Shown here in pieces: positions 12,244-30,262 of a stretch of DNA of 64,000 bases. The stretch lies in sequence record NC_048053.1, one strand, 5' to 3'. The notes beneath the pieces are model-generated. The model had not been told where the DNA came from. It was given only the letters and a program-made list of their open reading frames with translations, and did no database searches. The number at the start of each line of letters is the position of its first letter. Position 1 is the first letter of the stretch. The position numbers were made by a program, and so were the translations under genes.

Positions 12244-13703
12244 GACATATTCCTTTCGCTGTATGTCACATTGATTTGTAGATTACGCAATGCAACATAT
12301 TCGAGTTTGCTGTTTGGAATCAGATCCTGAATCGGACTAAGTACGTTCAGATAATCAACTTCCGGACGCTTAACAGGTTCATCAGGATCGGTGTGATCGT
12401 ATTTCACTGCGTCGATGATATCGGAGACTGCCAAGCGTTTTCCGAGAGAACCGGATTTACGCTCGAACAGCTTCATAACAGCAGTAGCGATCTTATCCTG
12501 ATTTGATTGACGAGTGCCGCTTGCGTCTGCAAACAATGCAACATCAATAATAACATCGGCAGCAAGTTTATCCGGATTCCACGTTTGAATTTCAAGTTCG
12601 GATTTATATTTATCTTCAATCCAACTTAAAAATTTATTCCACTGCGCACTAACAGGACTAGGGTTGATGCCGCCCCAACTGCTAGTGTTCTTTGGCAAAA
12701 TACAAACGCGAATAACGCCCATCCATTCTTTATCGTTCGGCGCAATATCACGCTGCGACATTATTACAACGTCAGCAACATCCGGATATAGACTGATTGC
12801 AGCTTTCCATTCATCGTGACGAATAAGTTTTCCTTTCGCACGACCGAGAACAGGCGCAAAACGTCTGTAGTATTCAGCAGAAGTTTCATCAGCAGCGCCA
12901 GCAATTGACGTTGTTGTTTTGCCTTGCAGAACACTGTAGTTAACTGCCTGAACTTTTAGACCAACCGTGTCACTATTTACCGTAGCGCCAAGTGAACGAG
13001 TAGCAGCGACGTTAAAAGTATAACCAACAGGAGGAATGCTTCCCCATCGTTCGCCGCCAAATTGAATCGTAACGTCGCCATCATCTTTTGTAATGTCGAT
13101 AAAAATGTTCTGATTCTCATAGGCTTCAAACAAACATTTGTCGAAACGATCATAAACAATCTTCTGTCCGGTAGGAGTTTCCAACCAAACTTCAATATCG
13201 TTTGTGATTTCAAAGTTATCAGTGTTCAAATCGAAACTCAAATAATCGCCCGTTTGAGTAATCAGTTGAGTGTATTTAAAACGGGAACCAACGATCAGAT
13301 CAACTGTTTTAGTTTCACCTGCTTCCCACTGCGTTACTTCTGCAAGTAAGCCGGAAAGACTACCAATGCTGATCGGTTCATATTTATCCAGAATGATTTT
13401 AGTTCGCCCGGTGTTAGTTATCTGAGCACTAACAGAACCAGCAGATTTGCGCGTAATGTCTACGCCAAGAAAACGAGCGCCTGCATAAATACTTGTTGTA
13501 CGGCGAGCAAGACGGATAAATGCTTCTCGCGCTGCAATTAAAGTTGCGGTACTGTTTGTAATACCCAAATCACCTAACGCATCAGCAAGCAAACTAGTCA
13601 TACTACTGACTTGTTGATCAGTCCAATAAGTAGATTGCTGGAGTCTACTCAAAATGTCTTGAGCAAACTCTTCATGCGTAGTGAAAGTATTGAGAATTGT
13701 CAT
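12240..13703 (-). CDS. baseplate wedge protein (T4 gp6 / J-like)
   Basis: SIAGAADETSAEYYRRFAP...LIRHDEWKAAISLYPDVADV...IRVCILP pattern; follows a gp25-like gene. Confidence 0.85.
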   Translation of the reverse strand: MTILNTFTTHEEFAQDILSRLQQSTYWTDQQVSSMTSLLADALGDLGITNSTATLIAAREAFIRLARRTTSIYAGARFLGVDITRKSAGSVSAQITNTGRTKIILDKYEPISIGSLSGLLAEVTQWEAGETKTVDLIVGSRFKYTQLITQTGDYLSFDLNTDNFEITNDIEVWLETPTGQKIVYDRFDKCLFEAYENQNIFIDITKDDGDVTIQFGGERWGSIPPVGYTFNVAATRSLGATVNSDTVGLKVQAVNYSVLQGKTTTSIAGAADETSAEYYRRFAPVLGRAKGKLIRHDEWKAAISLYPDVADVVIMSQRDIAPNDKEWMGVIRVCILPKNTSSWGGINPSPVSAQWNKFLSWIEDKYKSELEIQTWNPDKLAADVIIDVALFADASGTRQSNQDKIATAVMKLFERKSGSLGKRLAVSDIIDAVKYDHTDPDEPVKRPEVDYLNVLSPIQDLIPNSKLEYVALRNLQINVTYSERNMS

Positions 13704-14113
13704 AGCGGCCTCAATGCAAATGTGACGGAATCCTTATCTTCCAGCGCAGGAACTCTCCATGCAATATAGCATTCGTAAGTTTGCTGTTCAGAGCGGAAAA
13801 CTTTCACATAAATATTTGTGATATCGTTAGTCAATCCGTTATCCGGATCTTCGAGCGCAGTTTTAATATGCGTTTGAATCCATCCGGCTGTTTCATCGTC
13901 GAACGGTTCGAATAAATCTTTATAGACAAGGGAACCAAATTTCTCCCGCCATTTACGCGAACCTTTTCGCGTACCGATAACGAATAAAACTTTTTGCGTG
14001 ATGCTGTCCATATCCTGAACTGTATCACGCAATTCCATTTTGATATCCATGTTGATATCAGAATAGATTGCTTCGTTAGCAGGAACGTTAACACGCTTTG
14101 TAATTATGCCCAT
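13700..14113 (-). CDS. baseplate wedge gp25-like protein
   Basis: YSDINMD...SITQKVLFVIGTRKGSRKWREKFGS matches the gp25/GPW motif. Confidence 0.85.
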   Translation of the reverse strand: MGIITKRVNVPANEAIYSDINMDIKMELRDTVQDMDSITQKVLFVIGTRKGSRKWREKFGSLVYKDLFEPFDDETAGWIQTHIKTALEDPDNGLTNDITNIYVKVFRSEQQTYECYIAWRVPALEDKDSVTFALRPL

Positions 14114-14403
14114 TAGCCAAACCCTACGTTACCTGAACCGTTGCTTGCCGTATCGCCGCAAGTATTTCCGTCTCCCGCACGCTGCGCAGGTTTTCCATTT
14201 ACGAAAACAGTTGCGCCGCTAGTAGCGTATCCGGTATGTGGCGGTTTCTTTGGCTTCCAGTGAGGTTGATAAGGATCGCCATTACGAACAACGCCCAAAC
14301 CATTCACAAAAACATTTCCGGAAGCACCAACAGGAACAACAGGAAAATACCCACTGTGACCAGTAGTTTGATCAGCACCCAATCGAATAACAGGTTTTCC
14401 CAT
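14113..14403 (-). CDS. PAAR-repeat spike tip protein
   Basis: PVIRLGAD..TGH...NVFVNG..VVRNGD...H...VFVNGKPAQRAGD..TCG. Confidence 0.92.
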   Translation of the reverse strand: MGKPVIRLGADQTTGHSGYFPVVPVGASGNVFVNGLGVVRNGDPYQPHWKPKKPPHTGYATSGATVFVNGKPAQRAGDGNTCGDTASNGSGNVGFG

Positions 14404-14429
14404 TAGATTTTCTCCTTTTGTTACTGGTT

Positions 14430-14436
14430 AAATTAG
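14430..14436 (-). promoter_or_regulatory. candidate late promoter core CTAATTT
   Basis: 27 nt upstream of the PAAR start, just past a terminator. Confidence 0.45.
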
Positions 14437-14440
14437 TGGC

Positions 14441-14477
14441 AGAAACAAAAACGGGCAGCACAAAGGCCACCCGTTTT
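14441..14477 (-). terminator. intrinsic terminator closing the non-coding tract
   Basis: AAAACGGGTGGC-CTTTGT-GCTGCCCGTTTT-TGTTT. Confidence 0.85.
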
Positions 14478-14927
14478 CGTATCAAATTTTTCATGCGGAT
14501 TTAAAAGTTTGACTCGCAGCCTATAGAATAACGGCGCGGCAATCGGTATATAGCTTGGGCAAATAAAAGCAGTTGTTCGCCGTGTTGCATCCGACAGAAT
14601 CGCCGCGCCATTTGGAGGCGGCACAAAACCCCACGTCTGAAATTTTGTTTGTCTGAATAAGCGGAGTTACCCGCAATTTACCGCAATCAAATTTAAATTT
14701 TTCGGCAAGTGTTGTCGCTGTCTAACACATCCCCATAATGTGCGCTTTGCCGTACACCACGGCGTAGCCAGACGCGAGACGTTTCGGTGTTCTCGCACAC
14801 ATTTCTATAATGCCTGATCTTACCCCTTGCCAAAGCAAGATCAGTAGCGACATAAGGAGGATGAGATCTTTCACTCTGAATGTTTCCTTATATCGAGTTC
14901 TTCAAATACATTTTACAGTATTAAATC
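14478..14927 (-). ncRNA. candidate structured ncRNA (about 450 nt)
   Basis: no credible ORF; stems 14531-14543/14599-14611, 14737-14803 (multibranch), 14814-14844 and 14848-14895; stem mismatches resolve as G-U pairs on the minus strand. Confidence 0.5.
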
Positions 14928-14954
14928 TTAACCACCGTAGAACCAATCATTCAT
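14928..14954 (-). CDS. possible 8-aa mini-ORF MNDWFYGG
   Basis: AGGAG RBS 8 nt upstream; ATG overlaps the preceding TGA. Confidence 0.3.
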   Translation of the reverse strand: MNDWFYGG

Positions 14955-15055
14955 TTTGCTTCTCCTGTTCCGCAATCAATTATCCACGCACGTAATTCTT
15001 CGCGAGACATTTTTGCAGGCGGTGTGAATGTTTCAGATTTAAGAGCTTTATCCAT
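14951..15055 (-). CDS. small phage protein (MDKALKSETFTPPAKMSREELRAWII...)
   Basis: 34-aa ORF below the track cutoff; resembles small phage proteins with an 'F.I.RM..AL.S......lSREE.R.fi' pattern (from memory). Confidence 0.55.
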   Translation of the reverse strand: MDKALKSETFTPPAKMSREELRAWIIDCGTGEAK

Positions 15056-15094
15056 CCGGTTAATATCAAAAATAACAACCGGATCTACAAGCGC

Positions 15095-15406
15095 TCATTT
15101 TTCAGATGCACGCATCATGCAGTCTTGCGCTTCAAGCAGTTTACGCAAACCAGCACTTTTTTCTGCGCTATCCGGAATCTCGTTATCTAGCGTTTCCGCA
15201 ATATGTCGAAAACATCCAGCAATTCCCATCTTCGTGAAATCGCCTGCGAAGCGTTCCTGATCAAAGTAGTTCATGATCGGATTAGAATATTCTTTCTTCG
15301 CGCCGCCCCAATCACCAACTTCTTTCGGGCCAGGCATTCCGGTCGGGCCAGCATTTGTTCCCGGAGAATTTTTCTTTTCGGTTATATCAATACGTCTTTC
15401 CGACAT
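15095..15406 (-). CDS. small helical-hairpin protein, possibly Acb2/Tad1-like nucleotide sponge
   Basis: GAGGA RBS; C-terminal LDNEIPDSAEKSAGLRKLLEAQDCMMRA motif of a widespread phage family. Confidence 0.6.
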   Translation of the reverse strand: MSERRIDITEKKNSPGTNAGPTGMPGPKEVGDWGGAKKEYSNPIMNYFDQERFAGDFTKMGIAGCFRHIAETLDNEIPDSAEKSAGLRKLLEAQDCMMRASEK

Positions 15407-15420
15407 TTTTTGTTCCTCTT

Positions 15421-16400
15421 AGGTAACATCCTGCATTACGCTGTTAAGGGCAACGCAATGCAAGTTGTCTTCCCAACTCTCCAGACAAAAAGATTTTCTA
15501 TTCGTTTCCCGTCTCCCCACTGAAACAGGTCTAAACGAAATCTATCTTCGAAGCCTCGCAGGAGGTCTTGCAATACGCGATGGACGGCGTAGGCAAAATA
15601 CGATCTTCGGTCTGCGGCAGTTATTTGAAATCATCGTAAGATGACAAGATAGTGTCGTAAAACCGCTACCCACACTTTAAACTTCCTGCTAAATAAGATT
15701 CGAATACGGAAGCACCGCACGGGATATTCGAAAATAAGTCCTCTTTGATTGGCAACAGCTTTTATGGTACAGCGCAATGCACACTCAAACTTCGAATGTG
15801 CATTAAGCAGTGCGAAGATTTTGTTTCCCGGTTCCCCATTGAAGCAGGTCTAAACAAAAATCTTGGTATGGCCTAGCCGGAAGCCTGAAACATCAGCAAG
15901 AATGCTCAGTAAAGAACTATCCACACCTGCGGAGGTTAAGACACTTAATCGCGAATGAAAAACTTAATGTGGAATGCTTTCGCGCACCGCTTGTCAACAA
16001 GCCACATGGATATGTCAAACGTTGCCATTACACGCTCAGACGTGTGCGAGATACCGCTCCACCGGATCTCAGTATATTCACTTTACAGTTTTAAAATAAA
16101 TATACGGAAAACGTTGGCAAAAGATTTCCCGTTTATGTCCTCGTTAGAAAACATAAACGGCATTCTTTCTTGCTGTCTGCGATAAATCGTTTTTTCTCTG
16201 TCTGGAAGAGAAAAGGCGATTTCGTTTCCCCCTGTTAGGAGCGGCTTGGTAGCCTACAAGTGAAACGGCTGCCAGTGTTATATCCCCACTTTACAGATTC
16301 GTTCTCCCGCAAAAGAACTTTTATGAATCCAACTGGCTAGGGTCTACAGACAAGGCGGGGAAAAAGTAAAACCGCCTTGCCTCAACTAATTACTATTTAC
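15421..16400 (-). ncRNA. candidate large structured ncRNA (about 950 nt)
   Basis: about 1 kb with no credible ORF in an otherwise gene-dense window; more than 12 hairpins, multibranch junctions and a duplicated 33-nt module. Confidence 0.55.
15504..15855. repeat. two 33-nt imperfect direct repeats (15504-15536 and 15823-15855)
   Basis: GTTTCCCGTCTCCCCACTGAAACAGGTCTAAAC vs GTTTCCCGGTTCCCCATTGAAGCAGGTCTAAAC, 29/33 identical. Confidence 0.9.
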
Positions 16401-16409
16401 AGATTTGCT

Positions 16410-18188
16410 TTAGAAAATTTTGCGCTTAACTTGTGAATAGTAAACTTCAAAAGGAGCGCCATATAAAGCAGGGCCACGTTGCGCACGCGCCGTAACTTTA
16501 CCTGTATGAAGATGCACTTCGGTGATTTCTACCGTAGGCTGTTTCGGGCGAATAGTTTCGTAGATAGGTGCATTCAACGTAGGATAATCCTCGTAGAATT
16601 TAGCGAAACTTTCTTGCTGTTCTTTGGTAGCAGGAGGCAGAGTTAAACGCAATTCAGCGGCTTTCTTACCACGCGCCAAACGAACAGCACCTTTTTTCAA
16701 AGGTACGCCTTGATACATCAGATAAGAAGTAATGCGGCGAGCAATACCCAATACCTGATCATAAACAACGTCATTCATTTCTGGCGCACTAAAACGAATT
16801 CCGGTTGTTGGTTGTGGATGAGCCAGACGAACGCCAGTGCTGAAATAACCTTCTTCAATCAGGCGGCGCAAGAAGTCATAGGTTTTTGCAACGGTGCCGT
16901 CATAGATCGGAAATTCAATTTTTGGCGCATCAGCTTTAGGTTCAACAAAAGTTGGAAGCTGAACAGGCGCAGCCATTTTAACAGTCTGCGAAACTTTATA
17001 AGTGTTCTCCAGAATAGGAGTTGTTTTGATTACAACTTTATTCTTAATTGCTTTCTTATAGTTTTCGTCAGTGGTGAGTGAAGTAAATAGGCGATAGTCA
17101 ACCGGACTCGTATAGCCGCCGATAATATCGCGCACCTGCGTTTGCAGTTTTGCCTGCGTGTCAGCAAAAATTACGCGACTACGGTTAGGCGTACTCGGAG
17201 AAACCGGGAAGAACGCGCCGTAAACAGTTTTGATGTTGCGCGGCGATCCTGTTCCCGTAACCTTAGTTGCATTTTCCAGTTTCGGAAGTTTTTCAGCCTG
17301 ACCGACAGGCGCAACTTTCGGCGTACTGCGAATCGCTTTACCTTTAATATAACTGGTGCCTTCCGGATCAACAGTCAGATTACTCAGCAGAGTTTTCACT
17401 GCTTGAGAATCCATCCAACTTTCAATAGGAACAGCGAGATTGTGCGCGAGATAATGTTTCTTACGGCGCAGCAGAACAACAGTGCCTTTCGGAATAAGAG
17501 GCGAGAGAAGTTTTTTCTTCGCAGTTCCGACATAAGCAAACGAGTCGTTCTTCAAATCTGAAATTTGACCAAACGGTGCGGTAAATTCCAGAGCGCCCAT
17601 GATGTTCTGCGCAGTTTCATGGCCGCGAACAATAAACTGAATTCGAGGACTATCTTTCAAACGAAGATCATAACGGTCTTTGTTGAGATAGGTAATCTTG
17701 ATCAGATCGCCTTTCTCAAGTTCCAGATCATATTCGTCCGAAGCATCATCTACCGCCATTTTCTTGCCAGTATATTTGAGATACTTAGGCGCGGCAGATT
17801 CAGAGCTAACATCCAGCACATCGAAAACACGTTGAGAGTTTTCAGCATACTCACGCGCAGCAAGCATAGCGGTAGCGAGATTGTAGCTAATGGATTTTTC
17901 TTTCGGTGGAACTAACTGAACATGAACACTGCTACTTGCGCTCATGAAAACAGTTTGATTATCGTCGCGAGTTCCGGCGAAGTGCATTCCAGTAAGACGC
18001 TCTACCGCGTCAGCACTAATGCTTTCGTGTGCGATACGATCACCGGGAACAATTTCAGTGATCTCCCCACGGTGCCAGACATATGCGGCGCGTCCGTTAT
18101 GACCAATAAAATGATCACCTACTTTAGAAATTGACCGTGGGATAATTCCCAAGTCAGAGATAACGCGAGAAGGTTTTTGAACAATCAT
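16410..18188 (-). CDS. putative internal head protein
   Basis: 592 aa; several N-terminal S-x-S motifs; two copies of the shared Y(K/R)YxG domain. Confidence 0.65.
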   Translation of the reverse strand: MIVQKPSRVISDLGIIPRSISKVGDHFIGHNGRAAYVWHRGEITEIVPGDRIAHESISADAVERLTGMHFAGTRDDNQTVFMSASSSVHVQLVPPKEKSISYNLATAMLAAREYAENSQRVFDVLDVSSESAAPKYLKYTGKKMAVDDASDEYDLELEKGDLIKITYLNKDRYDLRLKDSPRIQFIVRGHETAQNIMGALEFTAPFGQISDLKNDSFAYVGTAKKKLLSPLIPKGTVVLLRRKKHYLAHNLAVPIESWMDSQAVKTLLSNLTVDPEGTSYIKGKAIRSTPKVAPVGQAEKLPKLENATKVTGTGSPRNIKTVYGAFFPVSPSTPNRSRVIFADTQAKLQTQVRDIIGGYTSPVDYRLFTSLTTDENYKKAIKNKVVIKTTPILENTYKVSQTVKMAAPVQLPTFVEPKADAPKIEFPIYDGTVAKTYDFLRRLIEEGYFSTGVRLAHPQPTTGIRFSAPEMNDVVYDQVLGIARRITSYLMYQGVPLKKGAVRLARGKKAAELRLTLPPATKEQQESFAKFYEDYPTLNAPIYETIRPKQPTVEITEVHLHTGKVTARAQRGPALYGAPFEVYYSQVKRKIF

Positions 18189-18197
18189 GACCTGTCC

Positions 18198-18638
18198 TTA
18201 TATCGAAATTTTTCGCATTGAGTGTTGCTGGAGAAGTCGAAGATTTCCAAACATCACATTATATGCAGAGGTTCCATACGTGTGGATGAGTTCGCGAGGA
18301 ACAAACGTGCCGAAATAAAGACAGTTAGGATCGAGTTGAGTGATTTCCATTCCAACGTTTTTATCAATGTTGGAAACCACCCACACCCACGGTTCCGCAA
18401 AGAAACGATCATTGCGAACATGGATACGATAACCAATTGCCATTTCTCGACCGCTAGGATCAAACGAAAACAGATCAACAGTTTTCTTATTCATTGCTTT
18501 CTGTACGGTGAACAATGCCATCGTGCGAAACTTTTCAGAAAACTGCGGAAGGTGCGCGTTGTCCTGTTCTATTTGCAGCAAGATTTTGTCTTGCTGTTCC
18601 TGCGTCATCTTTCCAAAATATTTTATTGCGAAAGGCAT
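18198..18638 (-). CDS. hypothetical protein
   Basis: 146-aa ORF coupled to the upstream kinase gene. Confidence 0.75.
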   Translation of the reverse strand: MPFAIKYFGKMTQEQQDKILLQIEQDNAHLPQFSEKFRTMALFTVQKAMNKKTVDLFSFDPSGREMAIGYRIHVRNDRFFAEPWVWVVSNIDKNVGMEITQLDPNCLYFGTFVPRELIHTYGTSAYNVMFGNLRLLQQHSMRKISI

Positions 18639-29583: not shown

Positions 29584-30262
29584 GTTCGAAAATCTTCGCT
29601 TTCATTTCCCATGTACGATCTGATTCGCGTTTGCAAACCGGACACGTCATAGTTATGGTTGTTGGAATTCCATGCTGCGCCGCTTTAACCCATTCCTCAA
29701 GACGCATCCAGAGATTTAAATCAGTTTGCTTTTCAATAAGCGCATAGTTCTCATCAAAGTTAAGACCCATATGCGCAATAAACCAATTGAAACGCGATTC
29801 ATGAGCAACTTCGTAATTGCGCATACGAGGCAAATCAAATTCATCAGAATTCGCCCTGAGAGTTAAAACTGTCACAGCAGATTCATCAATGATGCCTGCG
29901 TTATGCGCATCACAAGGAAACGTATTCAATGGAAGTTCATCAGTGTCACGCAGATCCGGAAATACCCCATTGGCATATTCGAACAGCGGCTTATTGCATG
30001 TCCAGAAAACTCGAAGCGGGAAATTTTCAATTAACATGCGTTGTTGGAAAACAAGCGCATGAGCATCCTGAATTGAAAGCATATCAATAGGAATAGAAAG
30101 AACTTCCGGAAGTGCTTCAAGAAGAATGGGAGCAAGATTATCTTGTTCGATAGCTTTTGAAATATGATACGCTTGCTTTCCGCTAAACGGTTTCATATCA
30201 AAAGAAGGAGGAAGGCCAGATTTCCAGCCAGCGGAAGGAAGGCTGCGTGTGATGATTTCCAT
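29576..30262 (-). CDS. baseplate hub assembly protein (gp26-like)
   Basis: ITRSLPSAG...FDMKPF N-terminus; C-terminal MTCPVCK; start reassigned to MEIITRS. Confidence 0.65.
   Translation of the reverse strand: MEIITRSLPSAGWKSGLPPSFDMKPFSGKQAYHISKAIEQDNLAPILLEALPEVLSIPIDMLSIQDAHALVFQQRMLIENFPLRVFWTCNKPLFEYANGVFPDLRDTDELPLNTFPCDAHNAGIIDESAVTVLTLRANSDEFDLPRMRNYEVAHESRFNWFIAHMGLNFDENYALIEKQTDLNLWMRLEEWVKAAQHGIPTTITMTCPVCKRESDRTWEMKAKIFEHA

Follow-up and report, generated by a model that had tools for sequence, protein, structure and literature searches.

The window, a 64,000-nt stretch of sequence record NC_048053.1, comes from the Dickeya phage vB_DsoM_JA29 (JA29), a jumbo phage of 253 kb (genus Salmondvirus). 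On its minus strand, at positions 15095-15406, the ORF list contains HOU08_gp106 (here gp106), annotated as "hypothetical protein". The ORF starts with ATG, encodes 103 aa followed by a stop codon, and is preceded by a strong Shine-Dalgarno sequence (AAGAGGAA, 15413-15420, minus strand), which we read from the sequence 6 nt upstream of the ATG. An initial annotation had reported this ORF together with its C-terminal sequence, and both were found exactly as described. It had also stated that the gene is isolated by long non-coding DNA. Indeed, gp106 is flanked by two stretches without annotated genes, of which the upstream one comprises 1,003 nt (15407-16409) and the downstream one 691 nt (14404-15094). 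Upstream of the first of these, which is approximately 1 kb long, is gp107 (minus strand; 592 aa, KMPT-N domain). The second, of approximately 0.7 kb, is followed by baseplate genes encoding PAAR, gp25-like and gp6-like proteins.

The downstream stretch contains an unannotated 34-aa ORF (14951-15055, minus strand), which is located 39 nt downstream of gp106 and is conserved in phage JA11 (35 aa). Counterparts were located at L002 3949-4056 (minus strand) and L008 3203-3397 (plus strand). The ORF matches the C-terminal half of gp110 of phage Yoloswag, whose gene directly follows the Yoloswag member of the gp106 family, and both the ORF and gp110 match phrog_17259. Comparison with JA11 revealed 6 synonymous and 12 non-synonymous changes, which is weak evidence for coding. 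The ORF may be a cassette partner of gp106; a possible parallel is described in a preprint, according to which Tad1-like genes are paired with a 29- to 36-aa ORF in cluster A mycobacteriophages.

Two terminator-like hairpins with T-runs (14441-14475 and 16129-16160, both on the minus strand) were detected, one after the gp107 homologue and one immediately in front of the PAAR gene. Between them, gp106, the small ORF and both RNA tracts are enclosed as a unit of their own. Promoter and terminator scans yielded nothing decisive, and no Rfam family was found in the region 14000-16600. In two wastewater libraries of cDNA type (their RNA status is a guess), near-identical short contigs over positions 13000-18500 fell only within the non-coding tracts (14580-14763, 15616-15765, 15831-15980 and 16216-16370; low depth), and none fell in the flanking genes. 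This hints that the non-coding tracts flanking gp106 are abundant RNAs.

Orthologues of gp106 are retained in JA11, JA13 and JA33 with 83% aa identity. Furthermore, in an approximately 95% identical relative from wastewater, the reading frame is kept intact by compensating +1/-1 changes at 15299 and 15306 (contig). The protein can be divided into two parts. Its N-terminal extension (residues 1-40; 15287-15406, minus strand) is Gly/Pro-rich, predicted to be disordered (pLDDT <50) and, according to the alignment, specific to the JA29 clade, in which it contains a conserved GPKE(V/I)GDW(G/S)G motif. Residues 41-103 (15098-15286, minus strand) form the family domain, which consists of the short helix NPIMNYF and a two-helix hairpin. 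AlphaFold2 modelling with 27 homologues placed short helices at residues 43-48 and 50-53 and the hairpin at 57-76 and 81-101 (pLDDT 82-93). The hairpin that had been predicted for the C-terminal half is thus present in the model, with a pLDDT of approximately 90.

The two parts differ in their codon changes with respect to JA11. Among the C-terminal 63 codons, 22 changes are synonymous and 6 non-synonymous, and among the first 40 codons, 6 are synonymous and 12 non-synonymous. Therefore, the C-terminal domain is constrained by purifying selection, while the N terminus is free to evolve. Within the domain, the second helix (AEKSAGLRKLLEAQDCMMRA, residues 81-100; 15107-15166, minus strand) consists of columns that are invariant in the alignments and nearly invariant among 146 diverse family representatives. 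In wastewater sequencing runs, high-depth 40-nt matches derived from other family members landed exactly on this helix. We consider it a candidate ligand-binding or oligomer-axis surface.

Profile searches assigned gp106 to phrog_1761 and phrog_5120 (E 1.5e-11 and 2e-11), both of which are annotated in PHROG as function unknown. In phages and prophages, the counterpart of residues 41-103 is a common stand-alone protein with a length of 61 to 64 aa. The family signature N-P-I-M-x-[YF]-F ... A-E-K-S-A-G-L-R-K-L-L-E-A-[KQ]-D-C-x-x-R-A is invariant or nearly so, with the near-invariant helix reading AEKSAGLRKLLEA.DC..RA, and outside of it the members are approximately 40% identical. All invariant columns are present in gp106 according to the alignments. 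When 1.84 billion cluster representatives (50% identity clusters) were searched with the family profile, 5,233 were found at E <= 1e-3 and 2,006 at E <= 1e-10. In addition, tblastn detected the family in 229 sequenced phage records, including phages of Vibrio, Acinetobacter, Brevibacterium, Gordonia and Mycobacterium, Erwinia jumbo phages and others, and a pattern scan of IMG/VR yielded at least 525 confirmed loci. Neither Pfam nor NCBIfam holds a model covering it. We conclude that gp106 belongs, as a divergent member, to phrog_1761/phrog_5120, a phage family of very large size. Because of its conservation in JA11, JA13 and JA33, the pattern of codon changes with respect to JA11, the PHROG matches and the family of 5,233 representatives, the ORF is genuine beyond chance.

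Among the 150 best representatives, 8 contain a tandem duplication of the family domain. A model of one natural tandem protein (P0170) showed a single compact two-unit body (pLDDT 86.5, pTM 0.82; computed from eight sequences only). This model supports the idea that a dimer of hairpins is the basic unit.

The initial annotation had proposed that gp106 is an Acb2/Tad1-like sponge, i.e., a member of the hairpin family designated PF24729, DUF7681 or phrog_717. This membership was not established. With the PF24729 profile, for which the curated cutoff is 27 bits, no match was obtained to gp106 at E <= 1, and none across the entire JA29 genome at E <= 10. The pattern P.S.EKS..l.KL.EA, which had been taken as reminiscent of Acb2/Tad1, turned out to be the signature of the phrog_1761/5120 family itself. 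In profile-profile comparisons of the family core (127 effective sequences) against T4-type Acb2 or T4-type plus JBD67-type Acb2, hhalign gave a probability of 0.08-0.26, with P at approximately 0.24-0.3. Searching the PDB sequences with the family profile did not retrieve any Acb2 or Tad1 chain, while in the control, the profile of T4 Vs.4 did recover PaMx33 Acb2 (1.8e-4). The cGAMP pocket motifs KGY (containing Y11) and N.VK (containing K26), which were taken from T4, PaMx33 and JBD67 Acb2 and are numbered as in PaMx33, find no equivalent when aligned with gp106 or with the consensus of the family.

Structure comparison did not change this picture, since the matches to solved folds were at the level of noise. 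A Foldseek search of the PDB returned no match at E <= 1e-3, and with VIA-align against solved structures, the hits were non-specific, T4 Vs.4 (7uq2) ranking 50th (Z 5.4, rmsd 5.4). VIA-wide fold searches with the monomer and with the tandem protein retrieved only generic helical bundles (Z < 8). The gp106 model (helices 43-53, 57-76 and 81-101) does have the fold of a hairpin protomer, which is too simple to discriminate between families.

Nevertheless, several weak observations speak for a remote connection between the two families. PF24729 was the most frequent Pfam match among the 146 diverse representatives, 13 of which showed weak matches at E <= 1, as did 4 representatives in a set of 27. 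The best of these matches (E 2.6e-6) may represent two weak matches summed in a tandem protein, and its bearer was not identified with an HMM built from T4 and JBD67 Acb2; for the tandem protein P0170, there is no precomputed Pfam entry. The family genes on contigs G018 and G049 scored 11.9 bits. The weak matches of the relatives share a single register, K-L-x-E-A-5x-R-A: the PF24729 matches, phrog_1454 (which is weakly matched by both Acb2/Tad1 and the phrog_1761/5120 family) and the best local hhalign path all pair GLRKLLEAKDC.VRA with AKTKLKEASMWACRA. Furthermore, 23 of the 30 nearest ESM-Atlas clusters contain members annotated as PF24729 (score 0.91-0.92, 209-219 of 256 features shared), and in a fold search of BFVD, 6 of the top 26 hits were short "Acb2/Tad1 hairpin domain-containing" proteins (E 0.4-1.7, probability 0.5-0.99). 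Among the Acb2 homologues in the text of the Hadary et al. 2025 supplement, no phrog_1761/5120 member was found. Possibly, the family branched off very far back from the Acb2/Tad1 hairpin superfamily, and we do not file it as a member.

The genomic surroundings of the family were analyzed by scanning 50 IMG/VR contigs bearing a family gene with the Pfam models of known sponges and then inspecting the ORFs. At the loci L019/L020 and L074, three overlapping genes were found in the order [phrog_872-like domain plus Acb4 (PF13876)], [family member], [Lockin]; the Lockin neighbor matches PDB entry 9p8l ("Lockin") with E 7.4e-30. Acb4 and/or Lockin adjoin the family gene at three further loci (L087, L053 and L065), the gene next to the family member at L024 encodes Sequestin (PF21825), and at L046, a gene for a phrog_872-like domain plus Tad2 lies 2.3 kb downstream. 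In total, a verified sponge family was present within 2.5 kb at approximately 9 to 10 of approximately 75 non-redundant loci, mostly directly adjacent to the family gene (raw count). As a comparison figure, Sequestin is present in only approximately 2.6% of sequenced phages. In Morganella lambdoid prophages, the 62-aa family gene is always located between the lysis cassette and the small terminase gene. In Shigella phage Sf6, this lysis-terminase accessory slot is occupied by gene 66, a founding member of PF13876 (Acb4 family); as a control, Sf6 gp66 matched PF13876 with 3.6e-35.

The family domain is also fused to other domains, among them a phrog_872-like beta domain, a phrog_419-like domain, WDGH and HTH domains. 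At L071, the gene order is [family domain plus WDGH], [X plus Tad2], [phrog_419-like domain plus Sequestin]. According to Table S1 of Tal et al. 2025 (bioRxiv 10.1101/2025.07.12.664507), there are Sequestin proteins in which the N-terminal half is the family domain, and a phrog_872-like domain is also found fused to Sequestin. Sequestin itself was discovered in that work by reasoning that sponges fuse to sponges. Thus, the general idea of a small, oligomeric hairpin sponge acting against defense, as put forward in the initial annotation, gained support from the adjacency and fusion to sponges and from the published selection of the family for its hexamer with pockets, while the specific Acb2/Tad1 identity did not.

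Two of the fusion partners recur across sponge families. The beta-rich phrog_872/9467 domain (approximately 65 aa, motif ...GYLV.Y.DGY.SW(S/C)PK..F(E/D).., no Pfam model) occurs in separate fusion proteins with Acb4, Tad2, Sequestin (Tal et al. Table S1) and the phrog_1761/5120 family (L019 1178-1693, L074 3486-3956 and L046 6332-6805; P0046, P0201, P0267, P0286 and P0306). This domain may itself be another sponge, or it may act as an adaptor. We considered whether the fused beta domain with YIGTK...SWSPK is Acb4 (PF13876) and rejected this, since PF13876 as represented by Sf6 gene 66 looks different; the genuine Acb4 neighbors of family genes were located by HMM. A phrog_419-like N-terminal domain is a partner of both the phrog_1761/5120 family and Sequestin, and WDGH (PF25311) joins the family; a three-gene island of such fusions is present at L071 3797-6272, with related proteins P0205 and P0264. 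Searches of PDB sequences with the fusion partners of the family gave nothing useful, NCBIfam provided no name for them, and an Atlas search with the phrog_872-like domain gave no lead.

In JA29 itself, PF21825 (Sequestin) had no match at E <= 10, nor did it match among the scanned relatives, and PF13876 (Acb4) had no match in JA29. A Tad2-like protein (PF11195, E 3e-14, above the cutoff) is encoded outside the window at 29790-30026 (plus strand; locus L093). Therefore, JA29 already holds one gene of a recognized sponge family.

It had further been suggested that gp106 and the structured RNAs form an anti-defense island pairing a sponge with RNA. Such a pairing is specific to JA29-like phages and does not characterize the family. 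At 78 other viral loci, the median gap between the family gene and its neighbors was 15 nt upstream and 30 nt downstream, and gaps of at least 300 nt were found in 4 of 75 cases upstream and 7 of 77 downstream. The 16-nt motif of the RNA module was not found at the other loci. In Yoloswag, the same slot contains four small genes, one of which is a family member. The related Dickeya phage AD1 carries its only copy approximately 17 kb into the genome, among small early-type genes and adjacent to a DNA adenine methylase gene; this protein (AD1_025, L009 2752-3204) has an N-terminal P-loop-like domain with weak matches to nSTAND NTPase and CoaE. Given the AD1 placement and the tight packing at the 78 loci, the neighborhood of protein and RNA therefore belongs to the baseplate locus of the JA29 phage lineage and not to the family.

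Members of the family have already been included in a published structure-guided screen. Tal et al. 2025 (bioRxiv 10.1101/2025.07.12.664507) applied AF2-Multimer to short phage proteins without an assigned function and selected those confidently predicted to form homo-oligomers in which several positively charged pockets lie between the protomers. They challenged 124 candidates with five signaling systems. These were type I Thoeris (3'cADPR), type II Thoeris (His-ADPR), type I CBASS (3'3'-cGAMP), and Pycsar with cCMP and with cUMP. Table S2 of that study contains at least seven phrog_1761/5120 members (constructs 16a, 17a, 18a, 19a, 24b, 46b and 61b), all of which were predicted to be a "hexamer", one of them a "dimer/hexamer". 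With these seven members, no culture collapse was seen in any of the five systems wherever transformation worked, in a screen in which candidates were paired, the hosts were heterologous and expression was unchecked; that the screen has limits is acknowledged by its authors. In a review of October 2026, seven sponge families are listed as characterized, and the phrog_1761/5120 family is not among them.

Since the family adjoins or is fused to proven sponges, gp106 is probably a counter-defense sponge. More precisely, we see even chances that gp106 is a sponge-like anti-defense protein whose target is a nucleotide-type immune signal not among the five of the screen. What the analysis shows is the gene itself, the class of its fold, how large and how conserved the family is, its tandem and fusion architectures and its adjacency to verified sponges, and the literature contributes the prediction of a hexamer with pockets and the negative screen. 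We envisage that two hairpins pack into a dimer unit and that such units then come together, probably as a hexamer. The invariant Lys/Arg/Asp/Cys helix and the aromatics of NPIM.YF would line positively charged pockets at the protomer interfaces. Provided that the JA29 copy keeps the function of the family, an immune signal derived from a nucleotide would be trapped in these pockets, and the host effector would never be activated. The signal of gp106 is probably not 3'cADPR, His-ADPR, 3'3'-cGAMP, cCMP or cUMP. Furthermore, a third signal is suggested by the location of the family gene, which is the third one of a set, with a CBASS sponge (Acb4) on one side and a Thoeris sponge (Lockin) on the other. 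Acb2 carries R67 and T74 where its equivalent last helix begins, and these residues bind cyclic trinucleotides on the three-fold axis; by analogy, we infer that a cyclic oligoadenylate would be a reasonable first guess for the ligand of the family. The function of gp106 may have drifted, because the HLP..LQ.VS.P motif is missing and a disordered N terminus is added. The JA29 neighbors of gp106, which are baseplate genes and RNAs and include no known anti-defense gene, speak against a sponge.

Three other explanations have to be weighed against a sponge for such a signal. That gp106 is a true Acb2-type sponge, holding CBASS cyclic dinucleotides such as 3'3'-cGAMP in the Tyr/Lys pocket of an interlocked hexamer, appears improbable to us. 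The shared architecture, the common register of the weak PF24729 matches, the weak matches of both families to phrog_1454, the PF24729 annotation of the ESM-Atlas and BFVD neighbors and the hexamer predicted in the literature would fit it. It is contradicted by the results of the profile, PDB and hhalign searches and by the missing counterparts of Y11 and K26. Moreover, the tested family members did not inhibit 3'3'-cGAMP CBASS, and contig G029 bears a canonical PF24729 gene in addition to its family gene. Even less probable, in our view, is a factor dedicated to the baseplate region, be it an assembly chaperone, a virion component or an RNA-binding partner of the two flanking structured RNAs. 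This explanation draws on JA29, JA11 and Yoloswag, in which the gene has the gp107 homologue on one side and the PAAR/baseplate genes on the other, with long structured non-coding tracts flanking it. Elsewhere, however, the family occupies other slots (between lysis and terminase genes, in early regions and in sponge cassettes), where it is tightly packed, and the single AD1 copy lies among early-type genes.

A more serious competitor, although still rather unlikely, is a protein for anti-defense or host takeover that acts on a macromolecule, i.e., a defense effector, a sensor or nucleic acid. In one version, it would protect against systems that detect sponges, such as Panoptes. The occurrence of the family in accessory and anti-defense cassettes and the negative outcome of the screen with five signaling systems are compatible with such a role. 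The Arg/Lys-rich invariant helix could bind nucleic acid, and HTH, FtsK-gamma and zinc-ribbon domains are among the fusion partners. However, this helix is nearly invariant from Vibrio to Mycobacterium phages, which is unusual for a surface binding a host protein; that a helix rich in Lys and Arg is nearly invariant across phages with widely differing hosts agrees better with a universal small ligand. In addition, the recurrent fusion partners and neighbors are sponges of small molecules, and the published models show enclosed, positively charged pockets of a size suited to a sponge.

It is a tentative possibility that gp106 and its relatives constitute an eighth independent class of phage sponges, possibly a distant Acb2/Tad1 offshoot, with pockets for a signal to which no characterized sponge family is known to be devoted or which is yet undiscovered. 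Candidate ligands would be cyclic tri-, tetra- and hexa-adenylates, decoy nucleotides of the Panoptes type or a new messenger. Such a class would explain the third-gene position between Acb4 and Lockin.

With its 5,233 clusters, the phrog_1761/5120 family outsizes several of the seven characterized sponge families and is found in phages of several bacterial phyla. It sits in multi-sponge cassettes, yet it has neither a name nor a Pfam model. The identity of its ligand could reveal the host signaling system that is countered, possibly one not yet described, and would add to the tools with which the host range of phages on defense-rich bacteria such as Dickeya is predicted. For JA29, a sponge function of gp106 would mean a second candidate counter-defense gene beside the Tad2-like gene.

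The known systems closest to gp106 include the hexamer candidates in Table S2 of Tal et al. (for example, Ga0105238_10000067168 and DTR_864865_68), which belong to the same family and carry the signature F(F/Y).(Y/F).HLP...LRKLLEAKDC.VRA. These candidates are the only family members with any experiment, and none of the tested proteins is from a jumbo phage. Compared to them and to the rest of the family, gp106 and the JA29 clade have the HLP..LQ.VS.P stretch of helix 1 replaced and 40 disordered residues added at the N terminus.

Acb2 (T4 Vs.4, PaMx33 gp26, JBD67 gp34) and the N-terminal hairpin of Tad1 resemble the family in their short N-terminal element followed by two long antiparallel helices, and in the weak similarity of the last helix (K-L-x-E-A.....R-A). 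The hexamer has been solved for Acb2, while for the phrog_1761/5120 family it is a published prediction. Placement within structural gene modules is also possible for Acb2, as in JBD67, where acb2 has the major head gene on one side and the adaptor gene on the other. In contrast to Acb2 (88 to 108 aa), the family protein has 62 aa, forms a separate PHROG and does not have the cGAMP-binding Tyr (KGY), the Lys or the C-terminal QP motif. The lack of a significant sequence or profile match for gp106 and the inactivity of the tested members against cGAMP-CBASS are further differences. Sequestin (PF21825, crAss001_48; T4 Y16O) differs in that it forms a dimer or tetramer and binds 3'cADPR via R8/E12/Q47/R61, while the phrog_1761/5120 members did not inhibit type I Thoeris. 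Like the family, it is an all-helical, stand-alone phage protein of 60 to 80 aa, and both serve as modules in multi-sponge fusions; the two are also found fused to each other or encoded by adjacent genes.
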